From Haliotis rubra (lineage: Eukaryota): 64,000 bases of DNA. Below the pieces are notes generated by a model. That model did not search any database, was not told the origin of the DNA, and saw only the letters and a program-made list of their open reading frames with translations. Numbering within the stretch: the stretch's first letter is position 1; each line of letters starts with the position of its first letter. Shown in pieces: positions 13,532 to 40,997 of this stretch. A program made the translations under genes and the position numbers. Where the stretch lies: positions 124,001 through 188,000 of the forward strand of contig NW_025766988.1 of assembly GCF_003918875.1 (NCBI RefSeq), written 5' to 3'.

Positions 13532-14715
13532 CTGTATATCCCGGGGACAGAGTGGCCAGCATCTGTATATCCCGGGGACAGAGCGGCCAGCATCTGTATA
13601 TCCCTGGGACAGAGTGGCCAGCATCTGTATATCCCGGGGACAGAGTGGCTAGCATCTGTATATCCCGGGGACATAGTGGCTAGCATCTGTATATCCCGGG
13701 GACAGAGAGGTTAGCATCTGTATATCCCGGGGACAGAGTGGCCAGCATCTGTATATCCCGGGGACAGAGCGGCCAGCATCTGTATATCCCGGGGACAGAG
13801 CGGCCAGCATCTGTATATCCTGGGACAGAGCGGCCAGCATCCTCAGTATATCCCGGGGACAGAGCGGCCAGCATCTGTATATCCTGGGACAGAGCGGCTA
13901 GCATCTGTATATCCTGGGACAGAGTGGCCAGCATCTGTATATCCTGGGGACAGAGTGGCCAGCATCTGTATATCCTGGGTTAGCATCTGTATATCCTGGG
14001 ACAGAGTGGCCAGCATCTGTATATCCAGGGGACAGAGTGGGGCCAGCATCTGTATATCCTGGGACAGAGCGGCCAGCATCTGTATATCCAGGGACAGAGC
14101 TGCTAGCATCTGTATATCCTGGGCAGAGTGGCTAGCATCTGTATATCCTGGGACAGAGCTGCTAGCATCTGTATATCCTGGGACAGAGCGGCTAGCATCT
14201 GTATATCCTGGGACAGAGTGGCCAGCATCTGTATATCCTGGGACAGAGCGGCCAGCATCTGTATATCCCGGGATCAGAGCGGCTAGCATCTGTATATCCC
14301 TGGGGACAGAGTGGCCAGCATCTGTATATCCGGGGACAGAGTGGCTAGCAACTGTATATCCGGGGACAGAGTGGCCAGCATCTGTATATCCCGGGGACAG
14401 AGAGGCCAGCATCTGTATATCCCGGGGACAGAGCGGCTAGCATCTGTATATCCGGGGACAGAGTGGCCAGCATCTGTATATCCCGGGGACAGAGTGGCCA
14501 GCATCTGTATATCCCGGGGACAGAGTGGCCAGCATCTGTATATCCCGGGGACAGAGTGGCCAGCATCTGTATATCTGGGACAGAGGGAGCATCAGATATC
14601 CCTGGGCAGAGTGGCATCTGTATATCCCGGGGACAGAGTGGCCAGCATCTGTATATCCCGGGGACAGAGGGGCTAGCATCTGTATATCCCGGGGACAGAG
14701 CGGCTAGCATCTGTA
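13532..14715. repeat. 31-bp satellite (CCGGGGACAGAGTGGCCAGCATCTGTATATC), left arm
   Basis: About 38 tandem units; source of many spurious ORFs. Confidence 0.97.
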
Positions 14716-15475
14716 AATTGCTGGTTCGCTTGATGCCCTTCTAAGGGGGTTGATCGGTGGTCATGCACTCAGACACTGGTTTGTAGTAGTCCAGACTCGA
14801 CTATATTTATAGGTCTCCCTGATTATACCACGGAACGGCGTCAAATAACATTCAATCAGCTAATTTTTTCGGATACTTTTCTTTGCCATGAAACTTTTAT
14901 CCATTGTTGTTAATGTGAGAAATAAAATGTTAGATTAGCAGTTTAGAAGTTTTTGAGTAACAAATCATGGCAAAAGATTACCCAAAATATAACTTGTGGA
15001 TAAAGTATTATTCAAAGAAAACTCAGTTGGATACTTTGGGGAGGCGGATTCAAATTTGACACTTCATTTGACATATTGTGGAGAAGCTCGATTGTTCTGG
15101 AAGATAATTCTCTACCTACACACGAAGCTATTATAGTATTGTTACTTGAAGATGTAAGAGGAAATGAGATACAGCGATGCTTTTTTTCGGAGAGATCACT
15201 GGCATAAATATAGAAATTGTTCAGGGGAGTGTAATTAAGTGGCAAACAAAACCATAGAGGTCGAGAAAAAAACACTCTGTAATTTAAGATTTGTGCATTT
15301 TCTTTATGGTAAATAAACAAGTGTAAGTAGAAAGGCCATCACTTATAAGAGAATATTATACAGCTTTTGGAGAAAAGTGGGTGTGTGTGGGGGTGGTGCA
15401 CACTATTGAGAAAAGGAGGGGTGCACACTTCATATTGACCCGAGTTTCAATGGTCATTTAACAAACTTCCAACAC

Positions 15476-15615
15476 NNNNNNNNNNNNNNNNNNNNNNNNN
15501 NNNNNNNNNNNNNNNNNNNNNNNNNNNNNNNNNNNNNNNNNNNNNNNNNNNNNNNNNNNNNNNNNNNNNNNNNNNNNNNNNNNNNNNNNNNNNNNNNNNN
15601 NNNNNNNNNNNNNNN
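15476..15615. other. assembly gap (140 N)
   Basis: N run followed by a short (GATC)n tract. Confidence 1.
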
Positions 15616-16249
15616 TCGATCGATCGATCGATCCGCCTATGAAAATGACGAAGTGCTACGATCGTTTTGTGGATATGGTTCCAAGCTGATAGACGATGCC
15701 TGTTAGGAGAAACCTTCTGGTTCTATAAATAGTTGAGTCTGGACGAAACAAACCAGGATGTTACGAACAAATCTCCGTGCATTGAAGGCACGCAATCAAC
15801 CATGTCGTGGAGGTTTACTATAACAGGTAGTCCAATTTTGTCACGATGTACGGCCAGCATGGGTCCCTGGGACCTATCACAGAGGAGTGATAATGGAACG
15901 TAGCAACTTATCTTGATTCTAAATATTATCGTTATATAACATTGATATGACAGGTAAAGATCCAGGTTAGAGTTGGTCTTTAGTCAGCCCGTGCATCTTA
16001 AAGGCGACTAACGAGATCACTGGATTGCCTGGTCCAGACTCGATTATTTACAGACCGCCGCCACATAGCTGGAATATTGCTGAGTGCGGCGTTAGACAAC
16101 AACAAATACCACATAGATAAGACCTGTTTTCATCATTAGTTTTAGCTGACGGACAAAAGAAAGTATACACCTATGTTTCGTGGAGGCTGAAAACAGAACA
16201 AACCAAGAAGTGGTTACTCGTGGCATGTATTTGATATGTTATGCATTAG

Positions 16250-16490
16250 AGTGAGTGTGAGTGAGTGACTTTAGTTGTACGCCGCACTCAGCAATATTCC
16301 AGCTATACGGCAGCGGTCTGTAAATAATCGATTCTGGACCAGACAATCCAGTGATCAACAGCATGAGCATCGATCTACGCAATTGGGAACCGATGACATG
16401 TGTCAACCAAGTCAGCGAGCCTGACCACCCGACCCCGTTAGTCGCCTCTTACGACAAGCATGGGTTACAGAAGGCACATTCTAACCCGGT
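16250..16490 (-). mobile_element. SINE family B
   Basis: Consensus match with (ACTC)n tail. Confidence 0.88.
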
Positions 16491-17918
16491 CGTTATGCTT
16501 GGGATAGGGGATAGATATCACAGGTGACATCACATGCTTTGGATTAATGAGTATCTCACAACATATACTAGTACTAACGTTTTGATAACGTTTTTAACTG
16601 TATGATCAAATTCAACTTTAAAGTGCTTTACTGTCTTTTGAGACACATATTTTTACATTACAATTCTAACAGGTTTTTAAGCGTTTTCCCGTAATTTATG
16701 TATGGACTTGTACTTTTAAAAATTTTAAGCCTCGCATGTGAATGACGCAAAAGTGAAAAACGTAACATTTTTATTAAAATCGTAGATTAGATTGTGTATT
16801 TTTCCCAGAAAGGTTGTACAGCGACAAGTAAATGTCATTGCAATCATTATAAGATATTTCTGAATATGGTTTTTGAAGACAGTGTCATTTGGTATATTCT
16901 TTTTTATATTACTGATACGATTCCAGATATTCAGATGCCATAAACCTACTCCAAGATCTTTACGACGTGATATAAATGTTAAAGTGTATGGACTTTACTT
17001 CCTAAACCTTTGCGGGGGAAATATAGGCTGAAAGTTAACCTTCACAACCTACTGCCCTGAACGAGTTAGTAAATTGTGTTTTTCTCAACATAAGAGTTGA
17101 GGTTAAGACAAGAAAACATTAGGGGAGGAAAAATTGACATGCTTCAACAAATACATGATATTCCGAAATGTGAGAGACTGTGGACAAATTCCTTACCAAA
17201 AACATGAACCATGGCAGCATGGTAAAACAGAGAAACGTCCAAGAAATTCCACAACATAGAAATATATACGTGTTTATTTCTATATCCACTGGCACCAGCC
17301 TGCGTTGTTGTAATCGGAGAGGCATCTATTTGATACATGTACAAATATAGGCGACCTCTGCACAGGCGATGACGAGAGCTGACAGGATTTTGACACTCGT
17401 TTGTGGATATTTTGGCAGGAGATTGGCGGTGGTTGCAATCAGTCCTGAAAAACCGGAACAGATTGGTGATTAACTCATACACGAGAATCTAGCCTCAACA
17501 AGGATCCTTCAACACTGCTCGAGTTTAGTTTCAAACACCGAAAAGGGTGTGTACGTTGCCGTCATTTGACCACTGATGAAAAGTCATTATTTGTAGTCTG
17601 AAAAAAACCAAAACATTCAATTATACATTAGAACCAGTACGCCATATACCTCATACACTTGGGATGTTCACTGTAGAAACATATCAAACCATATTTGCTG
17701 TTTTTTCATTTGATGTGTCATAGCTGAATGACCGACCTCGTACGTGTAATGCGCATGTGCATTTTCGCGATACACAATGGTGACTGGTCGATCAAAGCCA
17801 TATGACGTCACAGTGTTAATTGCTAAGAACAATACACTTTGACGTCCCGATGATTGCATGACGTCATCCGAACAATAGACTGCCTTCATTAAAGTTTCTC
17901 TGTATGGGGTTTTATCGG

Positions 17919-18481
17919 GTTACGTCGTCAGCTGAGATGACGTCATTCAAATCATATTGTGACGTAAAGTCCGAATGTCGTCACAAATGAGCTGTTCTAG
18001 ATGCTACCATGGGTGACAGCCGAAACGGCCGGCTGATGACATTTCACTGCTGTACCCGTACTCTATGTCAATGAGTGCAGACAGAAAAACGTGTGTGGAC
18101 CTTTTGGTTTACTTTTGTGTTTACAATGTCGATACACATCATGTGTTGGCCAATTTCCGGGTGTTATTGAGTATTTGAAGCACGGGAATATTTCATTTGA
18201 CGCCGTCGGTTCCAAATGAATTCCCGTGCTTCAAATACTCAATAACACCCGGAAATTCGCCAACACATGATGTTTATCTCCTAAAAGTAAACCGAAAGGT
18301 CCACACACGTTTTTTGTGTCTGCTCTCATTGACATCGAGTACGAATACAGCAGTGAAATGTCATCAGCCGGCCGTTTCGGCTGTCTCCCATGGTAGCATC
18401 TGGAACTGCTCATTTGTGACGTCATTCGGGACTTTACGTCACAATATGATTTTAATGACGTCATCACAGCTGACGACGTAA
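17919..18481. mobile_element. ~560-bp foldback element (near-perfect palindrome centred ~18205)
   Basis: TTACGTCGTCAGCTG...CAGCTGACGACGTAA, arms ~275 bp. No full copy seen in the right arm of the large palindrome. Confidence 0.85.
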
Positions 18482-19497: not shown

Positions 19498-20030
19498 GTA
19501 TATATTACCTCCTTAAACTATATCCCTTCTATGTGCTCTCAACCAAAGATTCATAAACTAAGGTTCATAATAACTGGGCCATACATACCCTCCACAAGGA
19601 CCTTATAAATACACTGTACATATACACTTGATACAGCTGAAGACCTCTGACTTTGTTGGAATACATGCAGACAAAGACGCATTGTGATATGAATAGAAGT
19701 GTGATAAGAATTTTTTTTATTAATGTTACATTCAATAAATATTCATCCTTATTGTCGTAGCCCCCAGAGCGCCTTTTAAAAAGGGGCCCAGGACAATATG
19801 CTAATGTTGGTGAAAGTGTCTTTGTAGAGTCAGCTTGCTGTCAGATTTGCGTTCCTAAGTCCCGCCTGGATGTACTGGGTGTGGGTTCCAACCCCCGAAT
19901 TTCTTTCCTGGTAGTCATTGGTCTGACAGCACCATTACGTGTTTGTAAATGGATTACCTGTGAATTGTTTTACGTCTGAAATCTGAATTCATCTTATGCT
20001 TCTTCTTATTCCAGAATAGGAAAGAATCAT

Positions 20031-20350
20031 TTGTCAACAGGTATTTATCAGACACGAGTGTCAGAGGGTGTTGCACTCCCTCCGCACCCCCGGAGTTTAA
20101 TTCACAACCATCATTCTCCGGCAGTCATCATGTTCTGAGGCCCGAAGGCCACAGGTAAGATGTTACAATACCTGATGACAATTACACTCAGCCATGCAAC
20201 GTTGTGTAATGGAAATGGAAAATTGAAATAATAAGGCCATAATCATTTGTATATACACATTCAATAAATGAGTTAAACTATTCTTACAACTGATTGGTCA
20301 CTAAAAGTGATGACGTCATATAGTTCCATTGTTGAGAACAATGTGGAACA
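20031..20350 (-). ncRNA. candidate structured ncRNA cassette, copy 1 (leader plus ~150-nt core)
   Basis: CRE 20311-20318, CCAAT 20293-20297, TATATA 20250-20255. Core 20031-20181 is closed by a 15-bp stem and contains a c(UUCG)g hairpin. Confidence 0.5.
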
Positions 20351-20819
20351 CTTTATCCAATGTTAACGACGTTTCAAATCAACATGCATTTTGTAATCAG
20401 AACAATATTTGGCGTTTGTGAAACCACCCTTTCATGCAGTTTATAAATTTTCGTTTTGCTAGTTTTTAACTAAAAAAATTAGTAATGCATTAAATGGCAT
20501 ACCTTCATTATACTAAACGGAATGACTCATTATCTGTCCCTCGGCAATCAATGCCATAGGTTACACTCTCAGAGTTTCGCGTGTAAAATCATTCGTTCTA
20601 CAGAATGGAATCTATTTTCTGATTTGCCTGATTGACATCAAGTAAAGTGTTTTTCACAGGAACTCTTGTAAGTAATGACGTCATGCTATTTCAGTGCAGA
20701 CGACCTTAGTAATATGACGTCACATTGTGCCCCTATCGTTAAAAAGTGACGACTAAATCAATTTATCCCAAACTGGCACAATGACATTATTTCTAGTCCG
20801 AAGGGAATTTACTATCAGC

Positions 20820-21180
20820 ACCTGAAACCATTTCCTAATTTTGATGTATATCTCCTCCTTCCAAAACGTATTTCCTAACTATTATTGAGATTTAGAACAT
20901 GTAACTATAGTTTACCTATTGAGACCGGCCGCTGGTATAATATTCCAAGGGACGAGAGAACGTGTCAACTATGCACTTCTAGAAGCATCGCAGATGAATA
21001 CCATTATAATTTTCATTGCAAAGCATTAGATACTTTGAGAAAACAATATTTACCCACCCATCTACTTTCTCTTCCCAATGAAACAAAGTTCACGAAAATA
21101 TTATCTTTAAAAACTTCTCGAGATATAGTAAATCTATCAAAATATATCCTACATCTATCATCTCTTGTCAGAAAAAATGT
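20820..21180 (+). mobile_element. LINE ORF2 C-terminal fragment (CR1/L2-group-like)
   Basis: RFRTCNYSLPIETGRWYNIPRDERTCQLC...ADEYHYNFHC, a typical LINE C-terminal CCHC region. Confidence 0.8.
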
Positions 21181-21604
21181 TGATATGTTGTTTTCTGCCA
21201 TCTTGAATTTAAATTTATATGTGTATATATGTTTACAATATATGCTCTTGTACCACCAAGGTGGTTATGAGAATAAAGAATTGGATTTCAGGGTGATGAT
21301 CCAGTGATGTAAGGAAATGCAAGTTGCTGTGTAGAAAGAGATATGTGTTCCAAGCTCCCGCCTGGATGTACTGGGTGGGTTCGAATCCCTGATTCGCTTT
21401 CCTGATGGTCATTTGTCTGACAACATCAATACAGTGTCTGTGGCATTCACCAAACAAAATCTACCAACTGTTGCACGTCCTAAATATTTTGCTGATTCTA
21501 ACCTTATCCTAATACCTCTCGTGACATAACTTATCAAACGTTTCAGAAAATCTGAATCCATGACATGTTTCTACTTCTCATATTCCAGAACAGGAAACAA
21601 TCAT

Positions 21605-21920
21605 TTGTCACCAGGTATTAATCAGACACGAGTGTCAGAGGGTGTTGCACTCCCTCCGCACCCCCGGAGTTTAAATCACAACCATCATTCTCCGGCGGTC
21701 ATCATGTTCTGAGGCCCGAAGGCCACAGGTAAGATATTACAATACCTGATGACAATTTTACTTAGCCATTTAACGTTGTGTAATGGAAATGGAAATTGAA
21801 ATAATAAGGCTATAATTATTTGCATATACACATTTAATGAACGAGTTTAACTAATTCCAAAGCTGATTGGTCACTAGAAGTGATGACGTCATATAGTTCC
21901 ATTGTTGAGGAACAATGTGG
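21605..21920 (-). ncRNA. candidate structured ncRNA cassette, copy 2
   Basis: Core 21605-21755 nearly identical to copy 1; CRE 21884-21891, CCAAT 21866-21870. Confidence 0.5.
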
Positions 21921-22162
21921 AAAAATATTTTCCATTGTCAAATCAATATGCGTTTGTAATCAGACCAATATTTGTCTTTTAATTGCTATAAGCAGATCCT
22001 GTTCTGTTGTTGAGAACAATGTGGTACATGTCAACTATTGTTCGTGATGTCTCAAATTGATAGTGTTATGTCTCCAGACCAATATTTGGCGTCTGTAAAG
22101 TGATTTTGTTGGGTTTAATGTTCTGGTCGGGGTTTTTTTCATCGTCAGGTTTATACTGGCAT

Positions 22163-22412
22163 GACCCGCGAAGATCCGGGCTGGAATCGGTCTTCAGTAA
22201 CCCATGTTTGTCGTAAGAGGCGTCTAACGGGATCGGGTGGTCAGGCTCACTGACTCGGTTGACACATGTCATCGTATCCTATTTGTGTAGATCGATGCTC
22301 ATGCTGTTGATCACTGGATTGTCTGGTCCAGACTCGATTATTTACAGACCGCCGCCATGTAGCTTGGGTATTGTTGAGTGCGGCGTAAAAATAAACTCAC
22401 TCACTCACTCAC
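22163..22412 (+). mobile_element. SINE family B
   Basis: Full-length consensus match. Confidence 0.88.
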
Positions 22413-24231
22413 ACTCATACTGGCATGTTGTGAGTACTTCGTATCTCTGGCTAAAACAGCAGGAACACGCCACCCATTCTTTATCTCTGCAGCCAGTTAA
22501 TTCTCTTTTCCTGTCGTACCTTGTCGATTGTTCATAAAATGCAAAATTAATTTTGGATATTCCTAAAGTTGATATCATTAAAAATATCTATATGAAGCTG
22601 GGTTGTTCGTATTTATGCAGACCATTAAAGTATACGGAAAGACTTGGTTTGTTTATAGTTTAAAACTACATCCAGCAATATTTCAGTTAAAAGGCAACTG
22701 TGAGTCAGACAATCCAGTTGTTGAACCCATGGAGGACAAAGTCCCAGTGTTCAGCTTTAAGCATTGTTTCAGTCATTTAACGACTGGTCTATTTTACATG
22801 GTAGGAAGACAGAAATATCATTCAGTGTCGACCGCTATCATGGACGGTGCTGAGGGTCATAATTAGAAAGACTTGATTCAACGGTCAGCGGATCATGATG
22901 CGCCAATAGGAAACAAACAAACAGAAACAATATGGACAATTATCCGTCAATAGAGCGTGTTTCAAGCCAACAAACCACATTGGATAATTTTCACATTACT
23001 TCAGACCACAATGTAAACCAGTCACTATGTAAGCGTAGGCTACACAGTGAAACAAATATTGGAGCAAACTCGAATTGAAAGTCTAAGTCTGTGACGTCTA
23101 CTTCTTATCAAAAAGTAATTTCACAGAAACTCCCCGCAATATGACTCACTAAATATCCTGTATGTATATTTCCTTATTGTAAATTCATGATTTCCTTGTG
23201 CAATCTTGTCTCAATATCTGTCGTTAACTGCACAGAAGAACGGAACCATGTACCAGGACGTGGTAGGCGATTGGTATCGCCACATACGTCACACATCAGC
23301 AAAACGTGATATTTGATATAGGAATGCGCGATTCAATGTCTAAACCGAAATTCATCATAAAGTGTTAAGGAAACTACATATGCCTTGCATACGGCTGGGT
23401 TTTGTGTTGTCCTTATACAGGGTAGGGATGCGCAATGTAACCAGTTTACCAGTATTTACTGGTTCAGACATGAAGACGATACGCTTTGCGATACGCTGAT
23501 AAAACGATATTTTGACATGCATTGGGTAAACTTTGTAATACTCGGAAATCACCGGATATTTCTTTGTTTCATTTGTACCAAATATTATTTTCATTTTTAT
23601 TTCGTCATGATTAAAAGTTTTTATTAACGCTTAATCAAGTTTAGTGATTGTGTTGTGTTTTTGCTTTTATAAATCAAGCATTAACTCGATTATAAGTAGT
23701 TTTTTTGTGTTAAAAAACGCTTCTTGCAAGGTATTGCAATACACATCGCAATATATGCTTTCGCATCGCATTATATCGCAATATGAAAATTATCTGCAAT
23801 ACCCACCCCTAGTACAGGGCATAGTAGGTGTTATACTGAATATCACTAGGGTTGCCCTAACGACTAGTTGTCAAAATCGAAGCTGCGGAACAGCAATTAA
23901 TATTCCCAAGATCACTTTTCAAATCGAACAGTACATGCACTTGACGTGCACACAGGGACATTCTTTCTAACTAAAGTTAGAGATGTGGTGACCTCATTAA
24001 CTCCGGTTCTCACTTTTCAACAGTCGAACGCACATCGTGTTAATGAAGATGTGCATGCGGTTATTGACATTTGAGTAACACTCATAAATAAAGGTTCTTG
24101 GGAACATTAATTTGTTGACAAAAATGTTTTCCGGTCGAGATATGATTCATGCGACTGAAAGATGACCTCCACCCAATAGAACTGCGTGGAGGAAGGAGGA
24201 TGGTCTACGGTAGTGTGTAGCAGATAAACAC

Positions 24232-24465
24232 CAGGGCCCTTATTCTCGAAACGTTCGTAGCCCTAAGAATTCTTAACTCTGATCGTAGCCAATGTGTTAA
24301 GAATGGGCTTAAGAAGTTCGTAGGGCTACGAACGTTTCGAGAATATCTAGCCAGGGCCTAGATTTTCGAAGCTCTCTTAGCGCTAAGATAGTCGTAAGTT
24401 AGTGTTAATGTATGACACTTACGATTCTCCTAGCGCTAAGAGAGCTTCGAAAATCTAGGCCCTGG
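24232..24465. mobile_element. two adjacent ~115-bp palindromic MITEs
   Basis: TTCTCGAAACGTTCGTAGCCCTA and its reverse complement; CCAGGGCCTAGATTTTCGAAGCTCTCTTAGCGCTA and its reverse complement. The second family recurs at 45672. Confidence 0.85.
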
Positions 24466-24737
24466 TGTACTTGTCAGAGAAATTACGCCTATGTCAGCAT
24501 TTCAGATATATCCTGGTGTGTGGGAGGATAGGGGTTTGGGATGGGAGGGAGACAGAGAGAGCTAGAAAGAGAATGAGAGTGACATAACATTATCAGTTTG
24601 AGTCATCGTGAACAAGAGTTGACGTGTACCACATTGTTCTCAACAATGGGACAGGATCTGCTCATCGCAAAGGTCAAATATTGGACTGATTTCAAACGTA
24701 CGGTGATTTGATACGTCGTTTACAATGGACCACGTGA

Positions 24738-25052
24738 CCACATTGTTCTCATAAATGGAACAGTATGACCAATCTGTTTTCGTGACCAGTCAGTTTTAGG
24801 AATTGTTAAACTTTTTCATTAAATGTGTATACTCAAATAATTATGGCCTTTTAACTTCAGTTTTCCATTTCCATTACACAACGTTGCATAGCTATGTATA
24901 ATTGTCATCAGGTATTGTAACATCTTACCTGTGGCCTTCGGGCCTCAGAACATGATGACTACCGGAGAATGATGGTTGTGAATTAAACTCCGGGGGTGCG
25001 GAGGGAGTGCAACACCCTCTGACACTCGTGTCTGAAAAATACCTGATGACAA
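24738..25052 (+). ncRNA. candidate structured ncRNA cassette, copy 3
   Basis: Core 24902-25052 with a perfect 15-bp closing stem TTGTCATCAGGTATT/AATACCTGATGACAA. Confidence 0.5.
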
Positions 25053-25098
25053 ACGATGGATTTATTTGTCTGAAATATCATGAAACAGGAATATTATT

Positions 25099-25188
25099 GC
25101 CCCGATTCACAAAGTGCTCTTAGCTACGGCTATATGTAGGTGTTACTGATGACTTCAGCGCTGTCATCGCTTTGTGAATCGGGGCCCT
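25099..25188. mobile_element. short palindromic MITE
   Basis: GCCCCGATTCACAAAG ... CTTTGTGAATCGGGGC; a relative sits at 61418-61515. Confidence 0.75.
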
Positions 25189-25340
25189 GAAGGGATGAAG
25201 GTTTGTGAGACGCTGTGAAGACAATTGGTGACATTAACAAACAGTGTGACTTCTTCTTGCTTTGTGTGACCAATCATTTTTGCAAATAATCAAACTAATT
25301 CTTTTAATGTACATATACAAACGATAATGTCACGAATGTA

Positions 25341-26127
25341 GGAAAGAAAGTCACAGGAAAAAAAGTCACGGACAAAATGTCATGGATAAAAAGTCATGAA
25401 TAAAAAGTCACGGATAAAAAGTCATGGATAAAAAGTCACAGGAAAAAAGTCACAATACAATAAGATATATACTAGTTATATAATATATACCAGTGGGTTG
25501 TAAATTGTCTCAATTGTTATAACAGCTTCTGTTTCTGACATGATAACACGATTAATGAGGTAATTGGGACGTGAAACCAAGAGTGATCAGTGAACGTGAG
25601 TGTTGTCTACTGTACGGTACTGTACTGTGTGCTGACGATTAGCTGCCTGACTCTGAGGGTGTGGGTTCGAATCCCGGGTGGGACTCAACCCAACAAAAGT
25701 ACTAGAATTTCTACTTTACTAATAAAGTGTAATCACAAATATAACATATGTTACAAGTGACTTGGTTTAAGTATTTACGTTTAGCCATGTCCTTTCCCAT
25801 TTGCATCATGGATTTTATTAAAAGCAACATTATTTGAAAATAGTGAGTATGATTTTATGCCGCTCTTAGCAATATTCCAGCAACATCACGGCGGGGGACA
25901 CCAAAAATGGGCTTCACACATTGTACCTATGTGGGGAATCGAACCCGGGCCTTCGGCGTGACGAGCGAACGCTTTAACCACTAGGCTATCCCACAGCCCC
26001 AAATAGTATTTGAAGGACACATGTACAGTAAGCACGCAAGTCTCTGATTGATCCTGAGATTTATTGTCATAATTAAACATAATAATAAACAGGTATTGTG
26101 ACTTTTTTTCCTGTGACTTTCTTTCTG
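25341..26127. mobile_element. TIR element with 15-bp subterminal repeats and a nested family A SINE (25843-26000)
   Basis: GAAAGAAAGTCACAGGAAAAAAAGTCAC and its exact reverse complement at ~26099-26126. Confidence 0.75.
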
Positions 26128-27210
26128 ATCACCAATATCACATTACTTCACAATCATTATGTTGAACAGTTGAAGACCTCTGACTTTCATGCAACATGTT
26201 GAAATGGCTTTGTTTAATATACTCATGTCAATAATGGTTGTCACCCCTCCCACCCCAACCCCCTCCCCAACCCCCAACCCCACCCCCACACACATCCCAC
26301 ACCCCCTCTCCAATAAAAAAATTGAAGGGGTGACAACCATTATTGGCATGAGTATACATGCAGACAAAGACTCATTGTGATATGAATAGAAACACAAAAT
26401 ATATAAATACATGTATTACGTTCAAATATAAGGAATATTCATCCTTATTGTCTTATAAGAGTTTAAGGCCAGCATGCTTTCCTGTCAATGTCGTATTGTG
26501 GTTAAAATAGTTAATGTCACAATATGGCAGCTTCCCACCGCCATATTTGTTGATGACATTTAAACTGAATTAATACCGTGATTGTACATAAGAGAGTAAG
26601 TCTTATTTAACCACATCAAACAGAACAGGGAGGTAGAGTCTCTAGAAATTTATTTAAAGTTTTACGACCAATTCCATAAGCCTGGACTCACAAATAACTG
26701 ATTGTAGTGTATCGAGTGATAGCTGGAAACATATAGCTCTGAAATGAGACATATTTGTTTATCAATACTATCCAACACATTCCGGTATTGTTTGGATAGT
26801 ATGTTAGAAGATGAAGTGTCACGTAACTACGAGGAGCACAATCTCGACCATGTAGTCACGTCCGTAATTCCCGTCATGTGATACCCTCCATAACCAACTC
26901 GCCTTCAGTGGACCTCGCCCACAAGTTTGTTCACACGAATTCCATGTCTGGTTTTCAACTCCCCGTGAAACGCTGGCTGATAAACAACATATGCCTTGCT
27001 GCAGAAATTAAAAAAAAATTGATGTTTAACTGAATGAATTCGCATCATTTATGTAGCTGTCAGGAGCGACAATGCGACAATGTCCCTTCTCGGATTACAT
27101 AGTTGATTCACGAGGGACACTTTGCACTTGTGTCGAAGGTCGGATGAATCGTAATATTTAGTGAAATTAAGACAACTTCTAGACACCGGTGTTTGATTGT
27201 ATTACAATCT

Positions 27211-27458
27211 GTTGTTGTTGTTGGTTTGTTGTTTAAGGCCGCAAGCAGCAATATTCCAGTTTTTTGGAGGCGGTCTATAAATAATCGAGTCTGGACCAGA
27301 CAATCCAGTGAACAACAGCATGAGCAACGATCTACGCATTTGGGAATCGATGACATGTGTCAACCGCGTCAGCAAGCCTGACCACCCGATCCCGTTAGTC
27401 GCATCTTATGACAAGCATGGGTTACTGAAGACCAATTCGAACCTGGACCTTCATGGGT
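27211..27458 (-). mobile_element. SINE family B
   Basis: Consensus match. Confidence 0.85.
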
Positions 27459-29096
27459 CTACTACATATTGGCATTTAGGGAGAAGAAGATATGTCATGC
27501 GTCATGTAATCATTTGATGACGTCATAGTGTATTGTTATTAGCAATTAAACACTGGGACGTCCTATTGCATTTATCGGCCAATCACCAGTGTGTATCGCG
27601 AAAATGCACATGCGCATTACACGTACGAGGTCGGTCATTCAGCTATGACACATCAAATGAAAACACGGCAAATATGGGTTGATATGTTTCTACAGTGAAC
27701 ATCCCAAGTGTTATATATGGCGTTCTGGTTCTAAAGTATAATTGAATGTTTTTGTCTCACAGAAAAATAATGATTTTTCATCGGGTTCATTGAGGCCAAC
27801 GTACAAACCCATTTCGGTGTTTGAAACCAAACTCCAGCAGTGTTGAAGGATCCTTGTTGAGGCGAGATTCTCGTGTATCTGGTTAATCACCAATCTGTTC
27901 CGGTTTTTCAGGACTGATTGCAACCAATTCCAATCTCCTGCCAAAATATCCACAAACAAGTGTCAAAATCCCGTCAGCTCTCGTCATCGCCCGTGCCGAG
28001 GTCGCCTATATTTGTACATGTATCAAAAAGATGCCTCTCCGATTACAACAACGCAGGCTGGTGCCAGTGGATATAGAAATAAACACGTATATATTTCTAT
28101 GTTGTGGAATTTCTTGGACGGTTCTCTGTTTTACAATGCTGCCATGGTTCATGTTTTGGTAAGAAATTTGTCCACAGTCTCTCACATTTCGGAATATCAT
28201 GTATTTGTTGAAGCATGTCAATTTTTCCTCCCCTAATGTTTTCTTGTTTTAACCTCAACTCTTATGTTGAAAAAACCCAACAATTTACTAACTCGTTCAG
28301 GGCAGTAGGTTGTGAAGGTTAACTTTCAGCCTATATTTCCCCCGCAAAGGTTTAGGAAGTAAAGTCCATACACTTTAACATTTATATTACGTCGTAAAGA
28401 TCTTGGAGTAGGTTTATGGCATCTGAATATCTGGAATCGTATCAGTAATATAAAAAAGAATATGCCAAATGACACCGTCTTCAAAAACCCCATTCAGAAA
28501 TATCTTATAATGATGGTTCAAGTGACATTTACTTGTAACTTGGCATTGTACGACCTTTCCGCGAAAAATAAAAAAGCATCTAATGATTTTTTTAGAAATG
28601 GTACGTATTTTGCTGTTGCGTCATTCATTTGCGAGGCTTAAAATATTACAAGAGTATCGTGAATGTTATATAACGAAAATATTTAGAATCAAGATAAATT
28701 GCTGTACATGTGTTCATTATCACTCCTTCTCTGTGATTCTTGGATAGGTCCCAGGGACCCATGCTGGCCGTACACCGTGACAAAATGGACTTCATGTTAT
28801 AGTAAAGCTCCGCGACATGGTTGATTGCGTGCCTTCAATGCACGGAGATTTGTTCGTAACATCCTGGTTTGTCTAGTCGGACTCGACTATTCATAAACCA
28901 CGGTGATATCGCTGGAATATTGACTGTTGTTTTGAATAACATTCGGTCTTTGCTATGCATTTCATCACATGTATACTGCTACACCACAGAGGTACAATTC
29001 CATCTCTGTTTGATGACTTTAAAGAATGAAATTAACAAGAAATGTTGACGGCAAGGTAATGTATTTGATATATGGATATCAAAGGCGAAATTACAT

Positions 29097-29315
29097 GAGT
29101 GAGTGAGTTTAGTTCTACGCCGCACTCAGCAATATTCCAGGTATATGGCTGCGGTCTGTAAATAATAGTCTGGACCAGACAATCCAGTGATCAACAGCAC
29201 GAGCATCGATCTGCGTAATTGGGAATCGATGACATGTGTCAACCAAGTCAGCGAGTCTTACGACATTGAAGCATGGGTTACTGAAGATCACTATTCTAAC
29301 CCGGACCGTCACGGG
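29097..29315 (-). mobile_element. SINE family B
   Basis: Consensus match with an internal deletion. Confidence 0.85.
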
Positions 29316-30159
29316 TGCTATATTAATACATGTATCATTTTTTTGTGCTGAAAATTTGTTAAATGACCACTGGAACTCTGGTGAAAATGAATAGTGTGTG
29401 CGCGCACGCACACACACACACGCACACACACACACACCTCAAAAAGCTGTATCCGCCCCTGAATTTTCAAAAGTGGTCTTAGTTTTGTTTTAAAGGGAAT
29501 TATGTTAACTTCATAAAACTTTACGAAAATGCGACATTTATAAGTGATGGCCTTTCTACTTATTCTTGTTTATTTACAATACAAAAATACACAAATTTTA
29601 AATTACAGAGTGTTTTTTCTCGACCTCTATGGTTTTGTTTGCCACTTAATTACACTCCCCTGAACAATTTCTATATTGATGCCAGTGATCTCTCCGAAAA
29701 AAGCATTGCTGTATCTCATTTCCTCTTACATCTTCAAGTAACAGTACTATAATAGCTTCGTGTGTAGGTAGAGACTTATCTTCCAGAACAATCGAGCTTC
29801 TCCACTATATGTCAAATAAAGTGTCAAATTTCAATCCGCCTCCCCAAAGTATCTAACTGAGTTTTCTTTGAATAATACTTCATCTACAAGTTTAATTTGG
29901 GGAAATTCTTACCTTTACTGTTACTCACAAACTTCTAAATTGCCAAACTAATACTTTATTTCTCACATTAACAATAATGGAAACGAAATTGAATGGAAAA
30001 ATAAGTATTCGAATATTTCCATTTGAGTGAATGTTGTTTGACGTCTAGCTCTGGTATAATCACGTGTAAATAATTGAGTCTTGACTCATGCAAACCAGTG
30101 TCTGAGTGCATGACCACCGATCAACCCCCTTAGAAGTGCATTGAGAAAAAACGCAATTT

Positions 30160-32256
30160 ACAGATGCTAGCCACTCTGTCCCCGGGATATACAGATGCTG
30201 GCCGCTCTGTCCCCGGGATATACAGATGCTGGCCGCTCTGTCCCCGGGATATACAGATGCTGGCCGCTCTGTCCCCGGGATATACAGATGCTAGCCACTC
30301 TGTCCCCGGGATATACAGATGCTAGCCACTCTGTCCCCGGGATATACAGATGCTGGCCGCTCTGTATTATGCTATAAGTGCTGAGTGACATCGCTTGTGG
30401 AGCGACGTGCAGAGACAGATGCTAGCCACTCTGTCCCCGGGATATACAGATGCTAGCCACTCTGTCCCCGGGATATACAGATGCTGGCCGCTCTGTCCCC
30501 GGGATATACAGATGCTGGCCGCTCTGTCCCCGGGATATACAGATGCTGGCCACTCTGTCCCCGGGATATACAGATGCTGGCCCCATTGTCCCCGGGATAT
30601 ACAGATGCTGGCCACTCTGTCCCCGGGATATACAGATGCTCTCCGCTCTGTCCCCGGGATATACAGATGCTGGCCGCTCTGTCCCCGGGATATACAGATG
30701 CTAACCACTCTGTCCCCGGGATATACAGATGCTGGCCGCTCTGTCCCCGGGATATACAGATGCTGGCCCCTCTGTCCCCGGGATATACAGATGCTAGCCA
30801 CTCTGTCCCCGGGATATACAGATGCTAATCTCTCTGTCCCCGGGATATACAGATGCTAGCCACTCTGTCCCCGGGATATACAGATGCTAGCCACTCTGTC
30901 CCCGATATACAGGATATACAGATGCTAGCCACTCTGTCCCCGGGATATACAGATGCTGGCCGCTCTGTCCCCGGGATATACAGATGCTGGCCGCTCTGTC
31001 CCCGGGATATACAGATGCTGGCCGCTCTGTCCCCGGGATATACAGATGCTGGCCGCTCTGTCCCCGGGATATACAGATGCTGGCCACTCTGTCCTCTGTC
31101 CCCGGGATATACAGATGCTGGCCACTCTGTCCCCAGATGCTAACCACTCTGGGATATACAGATGCTAGCCACTCTGTCCCCTGGATATACAGATGCTAGC
31201 CACTCTGTCCCGGATATACAGATGCTGGCCGCTCTGTCCCCAGGATATACAGATGCTAGCCGCTCTGTCCCAGGATATACAGATGCTATCCACTCTGTCC
31301 CCGGGATATACAGATACTAACCTCTCTGTCCCCGGGATATACAGATGCTAGCCGCTCTGTCCCCGGGATATACAGATGCTAACCTCTCTGTTCCCAGGAT
31401 ATACAGATGCTAACCACTCTGTCCCCGGGATATACAGATACTAGCCGCTCTGTCCCCGGGATATACAGATGCTGGCCGCTCTGTCCCCGGGATATACAGA
31501 TGCTAGCCACTCTGTCCCCGGGATATACAGATGCTAACCACTCTGTCCCCGGGATATACAGATGCTAGCCGCTCTGTCCCCGGGATATACAGATGCTAGC
31601 CGCTCTGTCCCCGGGATATACAGATGCTATCCACTCTGTCCCCGGGATATACAGATACTAGCCTCTCTGTCCCCGGGATATACAGATGCTAGCCGCTCTG
31701 TCCCCGGGATATACAGATGCTAACCTCTCTGTCCCCGGGATATACAGATGCTAACCACTCTGTCCCCGGGATATACAGATACTAGCCGCTCTGTCCCCGG
31801 GATATACAGATGCTAGCCACTCTGTCCCCGGGATATACAGATGCTGGCCTCTCTGTCCCCGAGATATACAGATGCTAGCCACTCTGTCCCCGGGATATAC
31901 AGATGCTAGCCACTCTGTCCCCGGGATATACAGATGCTGGCCACTCTGTCCCCGGGATATACAGATGCTAGCCGCTCTGTCCCCGGGATATACAGATGCT
32001 AGCCACTCTGTCCCCGGGATATACAGATGCCAGCCACTCTGTCCCCGGGATATACAGAAGCTAGGCGCTCTGTCCCCGGGATATACAGATGCTGGCCTCT
32101 CTGTCCCCAGGATATACAGATGCTAGCCACTCTGTCCCCGGGATATACAGATGCTAGCCGCAGATGCTAGCCTCTCTGTCCCCGGGATATACAGATGCTA
32201 GCCACTCTGTCCCCGGGATATACAGATGCTGGCCACTCTGTCCCCGGGATATACAG
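30160..32256. repeat. 31-bp satellite, right arm (reverse complement)
   Basis: About 65 units, with a short unique interruption near 30365-30415. Confidence 0.97.
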
Positions 32257-33308
32257 GAGATATAGGAGTGGTATAGGGCTTATACACAAGTATATAACCT
32301 TCAGTTATATTTGTCTGCTTGGTTTACAGGGATCTAGATTGAAGCAGTGGAAAAGGAAATTGTCAAATTATAAAGAGTTTAATTAGCAAACAAAATTTCA
32401 GATAAAACCTGAGGTTTTTGTGTCCGCTAAAAGGTAAGATTATACATGTATTGAGCCGAAAGATCAAATATGATTCTCACTCACTCACTCACTCACTCAA
32501 AACTCACTCACCTAATGGTGAGCAATTATCCGAGACGCTCCACTGTATATCCAGTGAGGTTATTACCCCAAACGTGTTATAATACACGATTGTGGGAACA
32601 GAACAAGATAGTTTACATTCCTGGACGACAAGGATTGATGTCTACTAGTCATGGTGCAATTACACCTTGTTGTGTTAAACATTTCTAATGTCAAGAATCC
32701 CGTTTACAAACTACCGTTATCGTGTGGCGGTTTTCACAGGTTGGGCGTCGTTGGCGAGGCAAATTACTCAAACTGGCTGATGCAGCAGTAAACAAAATCC
32801 AATCAAAGAAGGGCGTTCAACATCTATGTTCTCGTTCCTTAATCATGTTGGTTTTTGAAGTCGCAATGGCGGATCAGGTTGCCGGTGAGCCACTGAACCT
32901 CCTAATGACAATCACGGTCATCTGATATACTTCAGTTAGGCATTTTCCAAACATCACGTTCCATCGATACCAAAGTGATATTTTCGTATCCCTATGTTCG
33001 TTCCCCTTGCATTTGGAGCTAAAGCGGAGCTAACATCACGATTTCAATTTTCTTTAAATGTATGTAGAAACAGTAGCAACTAAAATTCTGTTTTTTTATG
33101 CGAACACTTGCTGTTTTAACTAACGGGCACACACATTAACCGAGTCAGTCATTGGCGGACCAATGCCAGCGTCAGTGGTCATCCTATCCCAATGTAAATC
33201 ACTGACCAATCAGTGTCCGTGTAATACACTGACCAACCAATCCACGCGTCAGCCAGTGACGGACCAATTGATCAGTCATTGACCAACGTACCTAACATAC
33301 ATCATTGG

Positions 33309-33517
33309 CCCACCCGTGAAGATCCGGGTTAGAAGAGGCGACTAACGGGATCGGGTGGTCAGGTAAGCTGACTTGGTTGACACATGTCATCGTGTCCCAG
33401 TTGCGTAGATCGATGATTATGCTGTTGATCACTGGATAGTCTGGTCCAGAATCGATTATTTACAGACCGCCGTCTTGTAGCTAGAATATGACTGAGTGCG
33501 GCGTTAAACAACAAACA
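33309..33517 (+). mobile_element. SINE family B at the outer edge of the right arm
   Basis: Consensus match. Confidence 0.85.
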
Positions 33518-34972
33518 ATTCCGATCTCATTAAGTGGGGGAGTGACGACCTAATCGTCTGAGGTACACGTGCTTCCATTAGATGAGCAGAGGTGTCATAT
33601 ACAGTCAACTCTCGTTAATCCGACACTCGTGGTTGCAGAGAAATATGTAGGATTAACGAAAAAATGTCGGATTAATGTATTTGTGTGAAAATATCAATGT
33701 TTACTAAATGTCATGATCGTCATACTGTTGCATGCATATTATCAGAAATGGTAGATCTAGTTATCTTCATATTCACAGAAATAAAAAATAATAACAATAC
33801 ATCCTTTATTAACATTCACAGATGACATAACATACAAATATAATCACATAAGCAATCAGTTTCATATCTATTTCATAACCACATCGGCACAAAACTCGCG
33901 TTTGTTTTTACCACATATCAGCAGCCATTATGACCCGGATGTTGTATATGTTACAGTTCCATACTAACATGTGGACGTCTAGTGAACAATCAGGCATTTA
34001 TCATAACATTTATAATTTATAACTTGAAAAAGTCTTTGATGGTCATTAACATCAACCATCAGCTGGATTTTGCTGAGTGCGGCATTAAACAACAACGGAC
34101 AAACAAGCAACATCGTTGGCCAACAAATCCCGTGTTCGTCATTAACCAAAATCCCCATAAGAATCGTCTCCAACCAGTTTTGGGTTCTTTTTTGTTCAAG
34201 AGAATATGATGGCATGACAAGCATTAGAAATAATATTATAGAACCTGCAGTAATTCAGTGTTAAAGTATACATAATCATGATGTATATAATACAGACAAA
34301 TTGACAGGTCTGAAATCTTTAAAAAATATATGCTAGAAGTCCTTCTACCTCTTTCAGAGTACCTCTGCAACAATATATTATTATGTTGCCAAGTTTAATC
34401 GGTTAGATAATTTAAAAAGCGAAAGTGAGTTGTGATTAGTACGCTCAACTTCCCAGCGTAGACACCTGATTGGATAAAAAGTCAACCAAGGGAGGTAATA
34501 AAATCATCGGCTCGAGCCGTAGATGCATCCAGGGTGTAGTGGAGATTTATCGGAACGTATACCCTAGAGATTATCGAGGATGTGTGCGAAATTGTTTCCA
34601 AATTTTGCTTGTCAGTCGAGCTATAGCTATGCCTGAAAGTTACTAGCCCACAAAATAATTCACTAGCCCGAAATTGAAATGTGGTCACGGGTTTCAGCAT
34701 TTAGCTGCTAATATGATGAACATTTTAACCAGGCCATAACCTTGCCTGATTTAAAAGTGTATGATAACGTAACAAATCGGAGAGAGTGATATATTTACAA
34801 AATGACCCCAAGAAAATTAATTCACCAGCCAGTCGGGCCAGTAACTGTGGAGATTTACTGGCCCGACTGGATTTTTACTAGCCACGGGCTAGCGGGCGAG
34901 TGGCTATTTCGCACACTGCCAACAACACAGCTTCATATTGATACTTTTTAATGATGGCCAATTCAACTTTAA

Positions 34973-35135
34973 GGGGCGCCGGGGTAGCCTTATGGTTAAA
35001 GCGTTCGCTCGTCACGCCGATTCCACACATGGCTACAATGTGTGAAGCTCATTTCTGGGGTTCCCCGCCGTGATATTGCTGGATCATTGCTAAAAGCGGC
35101 GTATAACTAAACTCCCTCACTCACTCATTCACTCA
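34973..35135 (+). mobile_element. SINE family A
   Basis: Consensus match; flanking repeat TCAACTTTAAG. Confidence 0.85.
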
Positions 35136-35172
35136 ACTTTAAGACAATCCTTCTGAAGGGATGATGTAGCCA

Positions 35173-35243
35173 CAGACGCGAGCAGCCTGGTTCCCTGGGT
35201 CTGTTAACGCAACAGACCCAGGGAACCAGGCTGCAGACGCGAG
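35173..35243. repeat. short perfect hairpin flanked by a direct repeat
   Basis: GCAGCCTGGTTCCCTGGGTCTGTT...AACAGACCCAGGGAACCAGGCTGC between CAGACGCGAG copies. Confidence 0.75.
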
Positions 35244-35541
35244 GTACTCAAAACATGCCATGATTAAACAACGTCACACATGATGTGATTTAAGTTTGAA
35301 ACAACCAACGTGAGGTTCTGCGACCCAAGAACATGGTATGACGTACTTTGACACTCATGTCTGTATGATGCCTCTTTGCTGATAAGAACGATAGTGTGTG
35401 ACCTATGGCAGATAATATGTCATTCTATCAGTTTCGAGTAGGCATGCCATTTTATGTATAAAACATTTTAATTCGAGAACAAACAAAACGAAAATGTAAA
35501 AAAACGCATGTTGAGACATCGTTTACAATAGACAACGTGAA

Positions 35542-35815
35542 CCACATTGTTTCCCCAATAGATCAAAATGACGTCATCGGTTTTAATGACCAATCAGCTT
35601 TGGGAATAGTTAAACTCGTTATTAAAAGTGTATATACAAATGATTATGGCCTCTTTACTTCAATTTTACATTTACATTTATTAACGTTGCATGGCTTGAA
35701 CTGGGTGACAGTAAATGACAGCTGAGACTCTAGTGGCTCAAAAGATGTTGGTGCAGATCGAAAGGTACATAACTTTGACACTAGCACTCGTGTCTAATTG
35801 ACTCCTTTCACAAGT
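35542..35815 (+). ncRNA. cassette copy 5: conserved leader with a different downstream segment
   Basis: CCACATTGTT..TGACGTCA..TGACCAATCAG..GTGTATATACAAATGATTATGGCCT..AACGTTGCATGGCT as in copy 1; ends with the shared CACTCGTGTCT. Confidence 0.4.
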
Positions 35816-36009
35816 AATTAGTTTTTTATTATTAGAATAAGAATGTTTTCTCAAACATGTCACTTAAGTTTTTATGTAAGCGGAGAATGTTGGACATGGA
35901 CTCGACTTTCCCACATGGGTACAATGTGTGAAACCCATTTCTGGTGTCCTCTGCTGTGATATTTCTGGTATATTGCCGAAAGCGGCGTAAAACTAAACTC
36001 ACTCACTCA

Positions 36010-36260
36010 CTTTAACGACCGATCAGGTTTTGTAAAGTTAAACTCGTTTATTGAATGTTTATAATTTGCAAATGAAAAAAAAGCCTAATTACTCCAATGT
36101 TGTATTTACACTACACTCAGCTGCGTGCTATCATATCTGTACTCAGATATTGTAACATCTTACCTGTGGCCTTTGGGCCTGGGGACAGCCGGAGACTGAT
36201 GGTTGACAACTAAACTCCGGGGCTCGGAGGGAGTGCAACCACAGACCCGCGTGTCTTTGC
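36010..36260 (+). ncRNA. cassette copy 4 (diverged core; a SINE abuts the leader)
   Basis: TATTGTAACATCTTACCTGTGGCCTTTGGGCC..GCCGGAG..CTCCGGGG..CGGAGGGAGTGCAAC retained. Confidence 0.45.
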
Positions 36261-38809: not shown

Positions 38810-40252
38810 TGAGTGAGTTTAGTTTTACGCCGCTTTTGGCAATATTCCAGCAAAATCAGAAGCGAGACCAGAAATGGGCTTCAGACATTGTACCCATGTG
38901 GGGAATCGAACCCGGGTTTTCGGCGTGACGAGCGAACGCTTTAACCACTAGGCTACCCCACCGCGCCGACAAAGTGTTGAAGACGTCCCAGGGTGTTATT
39001 CTCGATCCAAGGGCGTATTATTCTGAAAGGCGTAAAACCCATGAAGATTCGGGTTAGAATTGGTCCTCAGCAACCCATGCTTGTCGTAAGAGTAGATCGA
39101 TGCTCGTGATGTCAATCACTGTATTGTCTGGTCCAGACTCGAATATTTACAGGCCGCCGTCATATAGCTGGAAAATTGCTCAGTGCGGCGTTTGACAACA
39201 AACAGACAAATAAAAGGCATTTAGAAGATTGTACATGTTGTCACCCTGGCTTTTGATATTAATCTAGACATAAGGACTTGTTGTGTCGTAGTCAGTGTAC
39301 TTTGTGTGGTACGGTATCCATGTTAAACTGTTATATGGAATTTTAGTGGGCGACGGAAGTCCGGAATAATACAGGCACGCAAGCATGGTCACGATGCTGA
39401 ATCTAAATATATTTCCTGGTTTGTCAGCACTACATCCGGGCATGCGAATTTGTCACTTGCATCTAAGCTGACATGCCTTGGTATAGTTAAACTGTTCAGA
39501 GCGTCGTAACATGTCATATTTGGGATTAATCTTTCTCAGTAAATATGTTATATTTGACAACTTTCTAAATGGCGTTGTGCATTGCGAGCGCCGTTTACCC
39601 AAACTCAGGAAGGGATTTCAACTAACCAAAAGCACGGAATCTTCTCTCAAGTGATGTAGGGGCGGTGGGGTAGCCTAGTGGTTAAAGTGTTCGCTCGCCA
39701 CGCCGCAGGCCCGGGTTCTATTCCCCACATGGGTACAATGTGTGCAGCCCATTTCTGGTGTCCCTCGCCGTGATATTGCTTGAATATTGCTAAAACCATA
39801 CTCACTCACTCACTCGAGTGATGTAACTTCTATTCACAGGTAACGAGTACAGCGTACAGTGTTCTTCACCACTCAGAAGTGTTTTATCGATATGACAGCT
39901 ACTGACACCAAGCGTGCGAATGGTTTTACGTAGCTTTCAGCAACATCACAGCAATATCAGCAACAGCAATAACGGGCGACACAAGAAATAAATATTGTAC
40001 CCATTTGGGAAATCGAGTGAGCAAGTGACTTTGGTTTTACGCCGCTTTTAGCAATATTCCAGCAATATCACGGCGGGGGATACCAGAAATGGGCTTCACT
40101 CATTGTACCCATGTGGGGAATAGAACCCGGGCCTTCGGCGTGACGAGCGAACGCCTCAACCACTAGGCTACCCCACCGCCCCTTGGGGAATCGAACCCGG
40201 GTGTTTCGCGTGATGAGCGAACACTTTACCCAATAAGCTAACCCCAACAGCC
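38810..40252. mobile_element. SINE cluster: A 38810-38967 (-), B 39038-39210 (+), A 39658-39815 (+), nested A-in-A 39920-40252 (-)
   Basis: Consensus matches. Confidence 0.85.
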
Positions 40253-40853
40253 TAGTTGACGCTGAGAATGCATAGGGCTATTCTTAATCTGATTTACCTG
40301 CTTCAAATGTGAAATACTCAAGACAAACTTCTCTTCGGGTGTCCCTCCTCTATTAAACAGACGGTTCTGGATATATGTACCAATTACTGAAATAGTATTC
40401 AGCACCCTCCCTAAAACATCCCAACATCTGAGGTTCGATCCAGGTATCAGTATCCTCCCAGCCTCAATGTACCTGTCGTTTTCTTACTCTCGGCGACGCG
40501 TGTATCGACCTGAACAGCACGACACCAGCCGTTACGTTCTACACCCTCACCCTACGTGTGAATGGACTGATATACGATCGGAACAGCCCATGGTGAACAT
40601 GGGTTTCTCGGTTGTAAGTGGACTATGTCAGTATACTGTAATCTGGCCCGAGGGTGTTTGTATCAACGCAGGTGCATGTGCAGGAGCAGGTGCTTGTACA
40701 ACCAAACCATATCAGAATTTATAATCCAAACTCACAGCTATACTGTTAAATCAGAACTGATTTACTACAGGAATTCATTTTTGAAATTTGTATACTTAAC
40801 TTATTGTATAATTGTTACGCATTAACCTCCCTTACATTTTGAAAAAACAAAAC

Positions 40854-40885
<32 letters not shown>

Positions 40886-40997
40886 TCAATGAAAGTTAGT
40901 TTTTATACAGAAAGTGCCACTTTGAAAGTCCATGTTGTGTTCGCATGCAAGATGGTATGAGCTTATGTTTATGTTTATATAATGGTTTAATACATAA

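Follow-up and report, generated by a model that had tools for sequence, protein, structure and literature searches.

A 64-kb window of the Haliotis rubra genome (the whole stretch analysed here, 64,000 nucleotides (nt) of contig NW_025766988.1) very probably carries three intact genes for U8, a small nucleolar RNA (snoRNA) of the box C/D class, with decayed copies besides. U8 is a well-known snoRNA which is needed for making the large ribosomal subunit. The genes belong to a family of repeated units which an earlier reading of the DNA, hereafter the original prediction, described as independently promoted, multicopy, structured non-coding RNA genes of a class that could not be assigned. The general idea and the strand that was read have both held, but the class is not unassignable: the family consists of further members of U8, a class that is already known.

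The assignment was made with cmscan against Rfam 15, in which the U8 snoRNA model (RF00096) has a gathering score of 41 bits. Copies 1, 2 and 3 match this model over its full length (positions 1-135 of 135) at 58.0, 57.4 and 56.3 bits respectively (E ~1e-7), exceeding the curated threshold by 15-17 bits. With matches so far above the gathering score, automated annotation would label these genes, which are listed below.

20047-20178, minus strand: U8 gene copy 1, model positions 1-135 (cmscan 58.0 bits, E 7e-8; box C AUGAUGA and box D CUGA intact)
21621-21752, minus strand: U8 gene copy 2 (cmscan 57.4 bits; three core positions differ from copy 1)
24905-25036, plus strand: U8 gene copy 3 (cmscan 56.3 bits; pre-U8 fold -67.8 kcal/mol)

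The RNA of copy 1 is likely to start 3-5 nt upstream of Rfam position 1, at around 20181-20183. Four copies had been predicted and four were found at about the expected places, sharing a 21-nt core word, CTTACCTGTGGCCTTCGGGCC, which occurs four times in the window against 0 expected. The original prediction saw no match to known RNA families; the families it considered included U3 and many others but omitted U8, and the C and D boxes were overlooked. It had also named a match to a known Rfam family as a result that would count against a new class, and RF00096 is such a match.

Copies 1-3 all have box C (AUGAUGA, consensus RUGAUGA) at positions 48-54 and box D (CUGA) at positions 128-131. Their 5' domain, UCAUCAG ... 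CUUACCUGU, is identical to the Rfam consensus and is followed by stem-loop 1. Identities to this vertebrate-derived consensus map to the functional single-stranded blocks, namely UCAUCAG, CUUACCUGU, the box C region AACAUGAUGA, the stem-loop 3 loop UGCAACACCCU and the box D region UCUGA. Stem-loop 1 is GGCC-UUCG-GGCC, the vertebrate ccucc/ggagg having become GGCC/GGCC with pairing fully kept. In stem-loop 3 (GGAGGG-AGUGCAACA-CCCUCU, with the conserved UGCAACACCC loop in copies 1-3) the auca/ugau of the consensus is replaced by CGGA/UCUG, and pairing is again kept. Stem-loops 1 and 3 have thus changed on both sides yet remain paired, as would be expected of a true but distant homolog. Stem-loop 2 has a CCGGAG/CUCCGG stem and an LSm-site-like motif, UGA(A/U)UUAA.

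Some of the helices in the original prediction can be placed on this structure. The GCC-UUCG-GGC hairpin is U8 stem-loop 1 and the CCGGAG/CUCCGG stem is stem-loop 2; the 'kink-turn-like' AAUGA/AA loop drawn with the latter did not survive, and the real box C/D pair was missed. An inner stem, UUGUA/UGCAA, has to be given up, as it uses the conserved stem-loop 3 loop and is absent from both the Rfam structure and the minimum free energy (MFE) fold. Differences between copies had also been put forward as preserving pairing. One of them, a change from U-G to C-G, was placed beside the CCGGAG stem, yet a G.G mismatch lies between the two, and the differences in copy 4 cannot count as covariation because that copy is decayed.

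Conservation among copies 1-3 is graded outwards from the RNA, bearing out the prediction of a near-invariant core with diverging flanks. Identity is 96-98.5% in the core (130-133 of 135 positions), 83-86% from -100 to -4, ~70% from -250 to -101, and ~50% outside -250/+60, where the sequence is unrelated. In a per-column alignment profile, near-invariance has a sharp onset at -5 (counted from Rfam position 1) and holds through +132; a second conserved block of ~17 nt follows just downstream of the RNA, at +136..+152, after which conservation decays. Copy-specific variants in the RNA are found at positions 17 (C/U), 56 (U/C), 57 (G/A) and 78 (A/U).

The 3' flank also contains a segment complementary to the 5' end. 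In copies 1-3, UUGUCAUCAGGUAUU (-3 to +12) shows 15-bp complementarity to AAUACCUGNUGACAA, which begins 4-5 nt past box D. The 15-bp closing stem of the original prediction is thereby confirmed in these copies and identified as the U8 5' end against the sequence just past box D. Its single variable pair is as claimed: copy 3 is perfect (U-A), copy 2 has U-G and copy 1 a U.U mismatch. The predicted 3' extensions are as follows.

20028-20046, minus strand: predicted pre-U8 3' extension of copy 1; AAUACCUGUUGACAA (20031-20045) can pair with the 5' end UUGUCAUCAGGUAUU except at one U.U mismatch (RNAfold; conserved block +136..+152)
21602-21620, minus strand: predicted pre-U8 3' extension of copy 2; AAUACCUGGUGACAA, with U-G at the variable pair
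25037-25056, plus strand: predicted pre-U8 3' extension of copy 3; AAUACCUGAUGACAA, a perfect 15 bp

Folds of the -3..+20 extent (RNAfold, copies 1-3) have energies of -63 to -68 kcal/mol, with the 15-bp stem closing the MFE structure. For copy 3 the pre-U8 value of -67.8 kcal/mol has a z-score of -6.5 against shuffles, and the opposite strand folds at -55.9 kcal/mol, i.e. 12 kcal/mol worse. An abalone precursor that reaches through the 3' complementary segment is therefore predicted in silico. The 136-nt human U8 RNA arises from a precursor of 161 nt, whose 3' extension base-pairs with the 5' end and masks it; it is in this duplex that disease mutations cluster, and normal processing was recovered in a compensatory double mutant. 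In zebrafish pre-U8 no extensive pairing of the 3' extension with the 5' end was seen, according to the authors who described the human duplex. Of all the details of the locus, the clean 15-bp duplex in a mollusc is therefore the most informative, and it argues for masking of the 5' end in the precursor as an old, selected feature.

Mature-length MFE folds, for copies 1 and 3 only, pair the 5' GUCAUCA with box C UGAUGAC (copy 1, minus strand: 20178-20172 with 20131-20125). Masking of box C by the 5' end could be a possible alternative once the 3' extension has gone.

Upstream of the intact genes, ~250 bp is conserved blockwise, in the following regions.

20184-20438, minus strand: promoter region of copy 1 (from alignments and the per-column conservation profile)
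21758-22099, minus strand: promoter region of copy 2; a further distal palindrome unit occupies 22001-22099
24597-24899, plus strand: promoter region of copy 3; a further distal palindrome unit occupies 24597-24652, and the cAMP response element (CRE) is degenerate (TGAC-CAAT)

The distal blocks of copy 1 are AAATATTG..CTGATT at ~-238 and the palindrome CCACATTGTTCTCAACAATGGAAC at ~-174..-150. This palindrome, ATTGTT-n3-AACAAT (CCACATTGTT-CTC-AACAATGG), is present in the intact copies and in a decayed 'variant cassette' described below, as is the CRE, TGACGTCA, at ~-145, although the exact CRE has been lost in copy 3. Three blocks are common to all five units that have a promoter, namely copies 1-4 and the variant cassette: a CCAAT block, GTGACCAATC, at ~-128; AGTTAAACTC..ATTRAATGTGTATA, ending at ~-79 (in copy 1, AATGTGTATA at -88..-79); and an invariant block, TTTCCATTTCCATTACACAACGTT, at -47..-19. 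The palindrome, CRE and CCAAT box of the original prediction therefore stand. The TATA-like box does not stand at the -25 to -35 that had been expected; it lies at ~-88 to -77 from the predicted RNA start, and a -30 TATA box is ruled out upstream of the intact genes. There is also no run of four or more T that could act as a terminator within +60 of these genes. With neither a -30 TATA box nor a T-run terminator, RNA polymerase II is the likely polymerase, and abalone U8 would then be transcribed as in vertebrates.

Other units in the window are clearly damaged.

36007-36256, plus strand: U8 pseudogene, copy 4 (from alignments; no Rfam match at E<=1)
35511-35843, plus strand: decayed U8-derived variant cassette (blastn and local alignment; no Rfam match at E<=1)
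35247-35377, plus strand: possible third, highly decayed U8 relic, 3' half (local alignment score 37; 18-nt blastn match; GACACTCATGTCTG resembles the U8 3' end)

Copy 4 has an 8-nt deletion that removes box C, and box D is lost as well; its 5' end is altered, another deletion takes 3 nt from the stem-loop 3 loop, and the distal promoter is absent. The variant cassette has a promoter 80% identical to that of copy 1, and its body aligns weakly to U8 from a box C remnant onward (score 41, against 21.5 +/- 3.5 and a maximum of 35 for shuffles). It lacks the 5' domain and stem-loop 1 and its box D has changed from CUGA to CUAA, while the 3' hairpin is kept; a T6 run follows at ~35823. By alignment it looks like a further decayed U8 derivative that lost its 5' domain, rather than a unit carrying some other cargo. 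The segment at 35247-35377 is a possible, weak candidate for a third relic. Copies lacking box C or box D thus show decay elsewhere too. No further full copies were found in the 64 kb by blastn with the whole copy 1 unit as query, and all copies in the window fall inside one 16-kb cluster. The locus shows birth-and-death turnover, with three intact genes and two or three relics.

The intact genes sit in a spacer of ~9.7 kb between the arms of a large inverted duplication (arms ~13525-17817 and 27549-32150, 93-98% identity). The arms contain a 31-bp tandem array, which is short in the left arm (13532-13824) but has >54 units in the right (30036-32150). The sole run of N (15476-15615) is in the left arm, outside every U8 unit. 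A palindrome of ~540 bp lies at 17930-18470 (arms 17971-18089 and 18311-18429, 92%) and is studded with TGACGTCA sites; the window has 11 such CRE sites against 0.88 expected, five of them within 17803-18463, in and around this palindrome. Interspersed repeats are found between the U8 genes at 20608-21315, 22024-22554, 23440-23970 and 24148-24501. Word depth, measured in two contig sets of unspecified kind from one related sample, comes to 33-136 for the U8 units, whereas the adjacent interspersed repeats reach 1e3 to 2.6e7, with the peak of 2.6e7 at 22201-22377. A match to a high-copy transposon had been named in the original prediction as another result that would count against it, and the low depth indicates that the U8 family is not a high-copy element.

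Repeats resembling tRNA-derived short interspersed elements (SINEs; TGGGGAATCGAACCCGGG...) occur at 25932-25992, 38899-38959 and 40114-40244. ARAGORN found no tRNA gene in the window, and there is a sub-threshold Rfam tRNA match at 40183-40241. Sub-threshold Rfam matches to SCARNA7 at 29359-29542 and 40832-40979, both on the minus strand (23.8 and 19.4 bits against a gathering score of 65), are probably due to chance or derived from repeats. None of six open reading frames of >=130 amino acids that were tested has a Pfam match and no host gene was identified, and the Rfam scan found no ribosomal DNA (rDNA) in the window.

Several points weigh against the U8 assignment. Stem-loop 2 aligns poorly to the Rfam model, with several non-canonical pairs flagged by cmscan, and its LSm-like motif (GUGAAUUAAAC or GUGAUUUAAAC) fits the consensus UGAUUAAc only with a 1-nt insertion. 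A candidate proximal sequence element (PSE) motif of small nuclear RNA genes is absent upstream of the U8 genes and no PSE is recognisable there, so a promoter of the SNAPc/Integrator type is not claimed. Expression, the cap and the RNA ends are assigned to abalone U8 by analogy. Gene conversion could account for part of the high identity of the three copies, and the differences within the family are one-sided only. These departures of stem-loop 2 and of the promoter from the vertebrate pattern, together with the inability of the original prediction to place the family, are what would speak for a new, unclassified structured RNA family that resembles U8 by chance. Such a chance resemblance is very improbable given a covariance model match that is full-length and far over threshold in three copies, the presence of every U8 hallmark block in the correct order, and a precursor duplex that parallels the human one.

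It could also be argued that a U8 gene elsewhere gave rise to all the copies as silent pseudogenes or retro-copies, their identity having been kept by recent duplication or gene conversion and not by function. Expression of the copies is a prediction by analogy, three decayed relics lie nearby, and the cluster is inside a large inverted duplication that could drive conversion. However, the RNA body remains at 96-98.5%, with the functional boxes all intact, beside flanks that have diverged to 50-86%, each copy has a blockwise conserved promoter which retro-copies would lack, and truly dead copies look clearly different; silent copies are therefore a very improbable explanation, though a little less so than chance resemblance. 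Repeats, tRNA-derived SINEs among them, fill the window and in places adjoin the copies, which might suggest a mobile element or SINE family carrying a U8-like module. Neither target-site duplications nor terminal repeats flank the units, which end within ~-250/+60, their depth in the related sample is low, unlike that of the true repeats between them, and all the window copies are in one cluster, so that a mobile origin is extremely improbable. A ribozyme reading of the cassettes was rejected. The assignment to U8 is retained.

The way in which the abalone genes might work can be proposed by analogy with the established vertebrate system, from which every step is drawn. Each intact gene would be transcribed independently, the ~250 bp of conserved sequence upstream driving a capped RNA polymerase II transcript that starts at ~-5 to -3 relative to Rfam position 1 and extends at least 20-25 nt beyond box D. 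In this precursor the 3' extension would form the 15-bp duplex with the 5' end, masking it. Box C and box D would form a kink-turn that binds SNU13/15.5K, NOP56, NOP58 and fibrillarin, and LSm2-8 would assemble, stem-loop 2 bearing the LSm-site-like motif. Trimming of the 3' end would then free the 5' end and give a mature RNA of ~136 nt. This RNA may act as a pre-rRNA folding chaperone in the nucleolus, its 5' end and stem-loop 3 loop pairing with pre-28S rRNA. The pairing would permit processing of internal transcribed spacer 2 (ITS2) and the 3' external transcribed spacer, the cleavages that yield 5.8S and 28S rRNA, after which a DDX51-type helicase would release U8.

The abalone RNA shares with vertebrate U8 (SNORD118; RF00096) a length of ~135 nt, the 5' UCAUCAG..CUUACCUGU, an internal box C after stem-loop 1, a UGAUUAA-like loop on stem-loop 2, a UGCAACACCC loop on stem-loop 3, and box D near the 3' end. 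The stem-loop 3 loop of U8 is conserved, and is essential in a zebrafish assay. The genes likewise look stand-alone rather than intronic, and they are multicopy as in Xenopus and zebrafish. As in human U8, the predicted precursor has a 3' extension complementary to the 5' end, although the abalone duplex (15 bp) is longer and more regular. The host differs in being a mollusc, and the stem sequences are wholly changed with pairing kept; stem-loop 2 is longer (CCGGAG/CUCCGG), with the insertion in its LSm-like motif, and upstream a SOX-like palindrome, a CRE and a CCAAT box are found in place of a recognisable octamer/PSE arrangement.

U3 and U13, as independently transcribed and capped box C/D snoRNAs, would also resemble the abalone genes in being stand-alone, in using box C/D proteins and in having pre-rRNA processing or chaperone roles rather than methylation roles. 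However, the copies scanned have no Rfam match to U3 or U13 even at E<=1, and the U3 boxes A, A', B and C' are absent from the abalone units. An invertebrate U8 ortholog has been proposed in CeR-2 of Caenorhabditis elegans, a trimethylguanosine-capped, box C/D-like RNA which is implicated in ITS2 processing and has 5' complementarity to 26S rRNA and an LSm-like motif (PMC2943600). CeR-2 is tied to U8 by function and a loose structural likeness, whereas the abalone genes match the U8 covariance model directly. A search for other non-human U8-like loci was made by scanning metagenomes with TCATCAGG..CTTACCTG..CATGATGA, a pattern chosen so as not to match the human TCGTCAGG form; it gave four loci, none of which is U8 by Rfam, and these are chance matches.

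Opinion in print on the distribution of U8 is divided. A 2010 paper stated that no invertebrate U8 homolog was known and put CeR-2 forward as a candidate (PMC2943600). Several papers from 2020-2025 on U8 and on leukoencephalopathy with calcifications and cysts (hereafter LCC) term U8 'vertebrate-specific' or 'unique to vertebrates'; two reviews instead describe it as 'metazoan-specific' or found 'only in metazoans'. No paper linking U8 to molluscs was found in the literature searched. The abalone genes bear on the choice between 'vertebrate-specific' and 'metazoan-specific'. The joint proposition that they are a true protostome U8 ortholog and that this point is not already established in print is put forward tentatively, as possible but rather doubtful. 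The occurrence of such a clear U8 in a mollusc is only a mild surprise, and its value for U8 biology is modest.

U8 mutations cause human LCC, and most patients carry a variant in the duplex that the 3' extension of pre-U8 makes with the 5' end. Should the abalone genes be a true ortholog, they would contradict the 'vertebrate-specific' label in the U8 and LCC literature of 2020-2025. They would also provide a very distant sequence for covariation tests of the 28S region that pairs with the 5' end of U8 and with its stem-loop 3 loop, and comparison of so distant a U8 with the rDNA of the same animal could help to settle which end of 28S rRNA, 5' or 3', is the partner of the U8 5' end. In that case both U8 and its masking precursor duplex would date to the bilaterian ancestor at least, rather than being vertebrate inventions.

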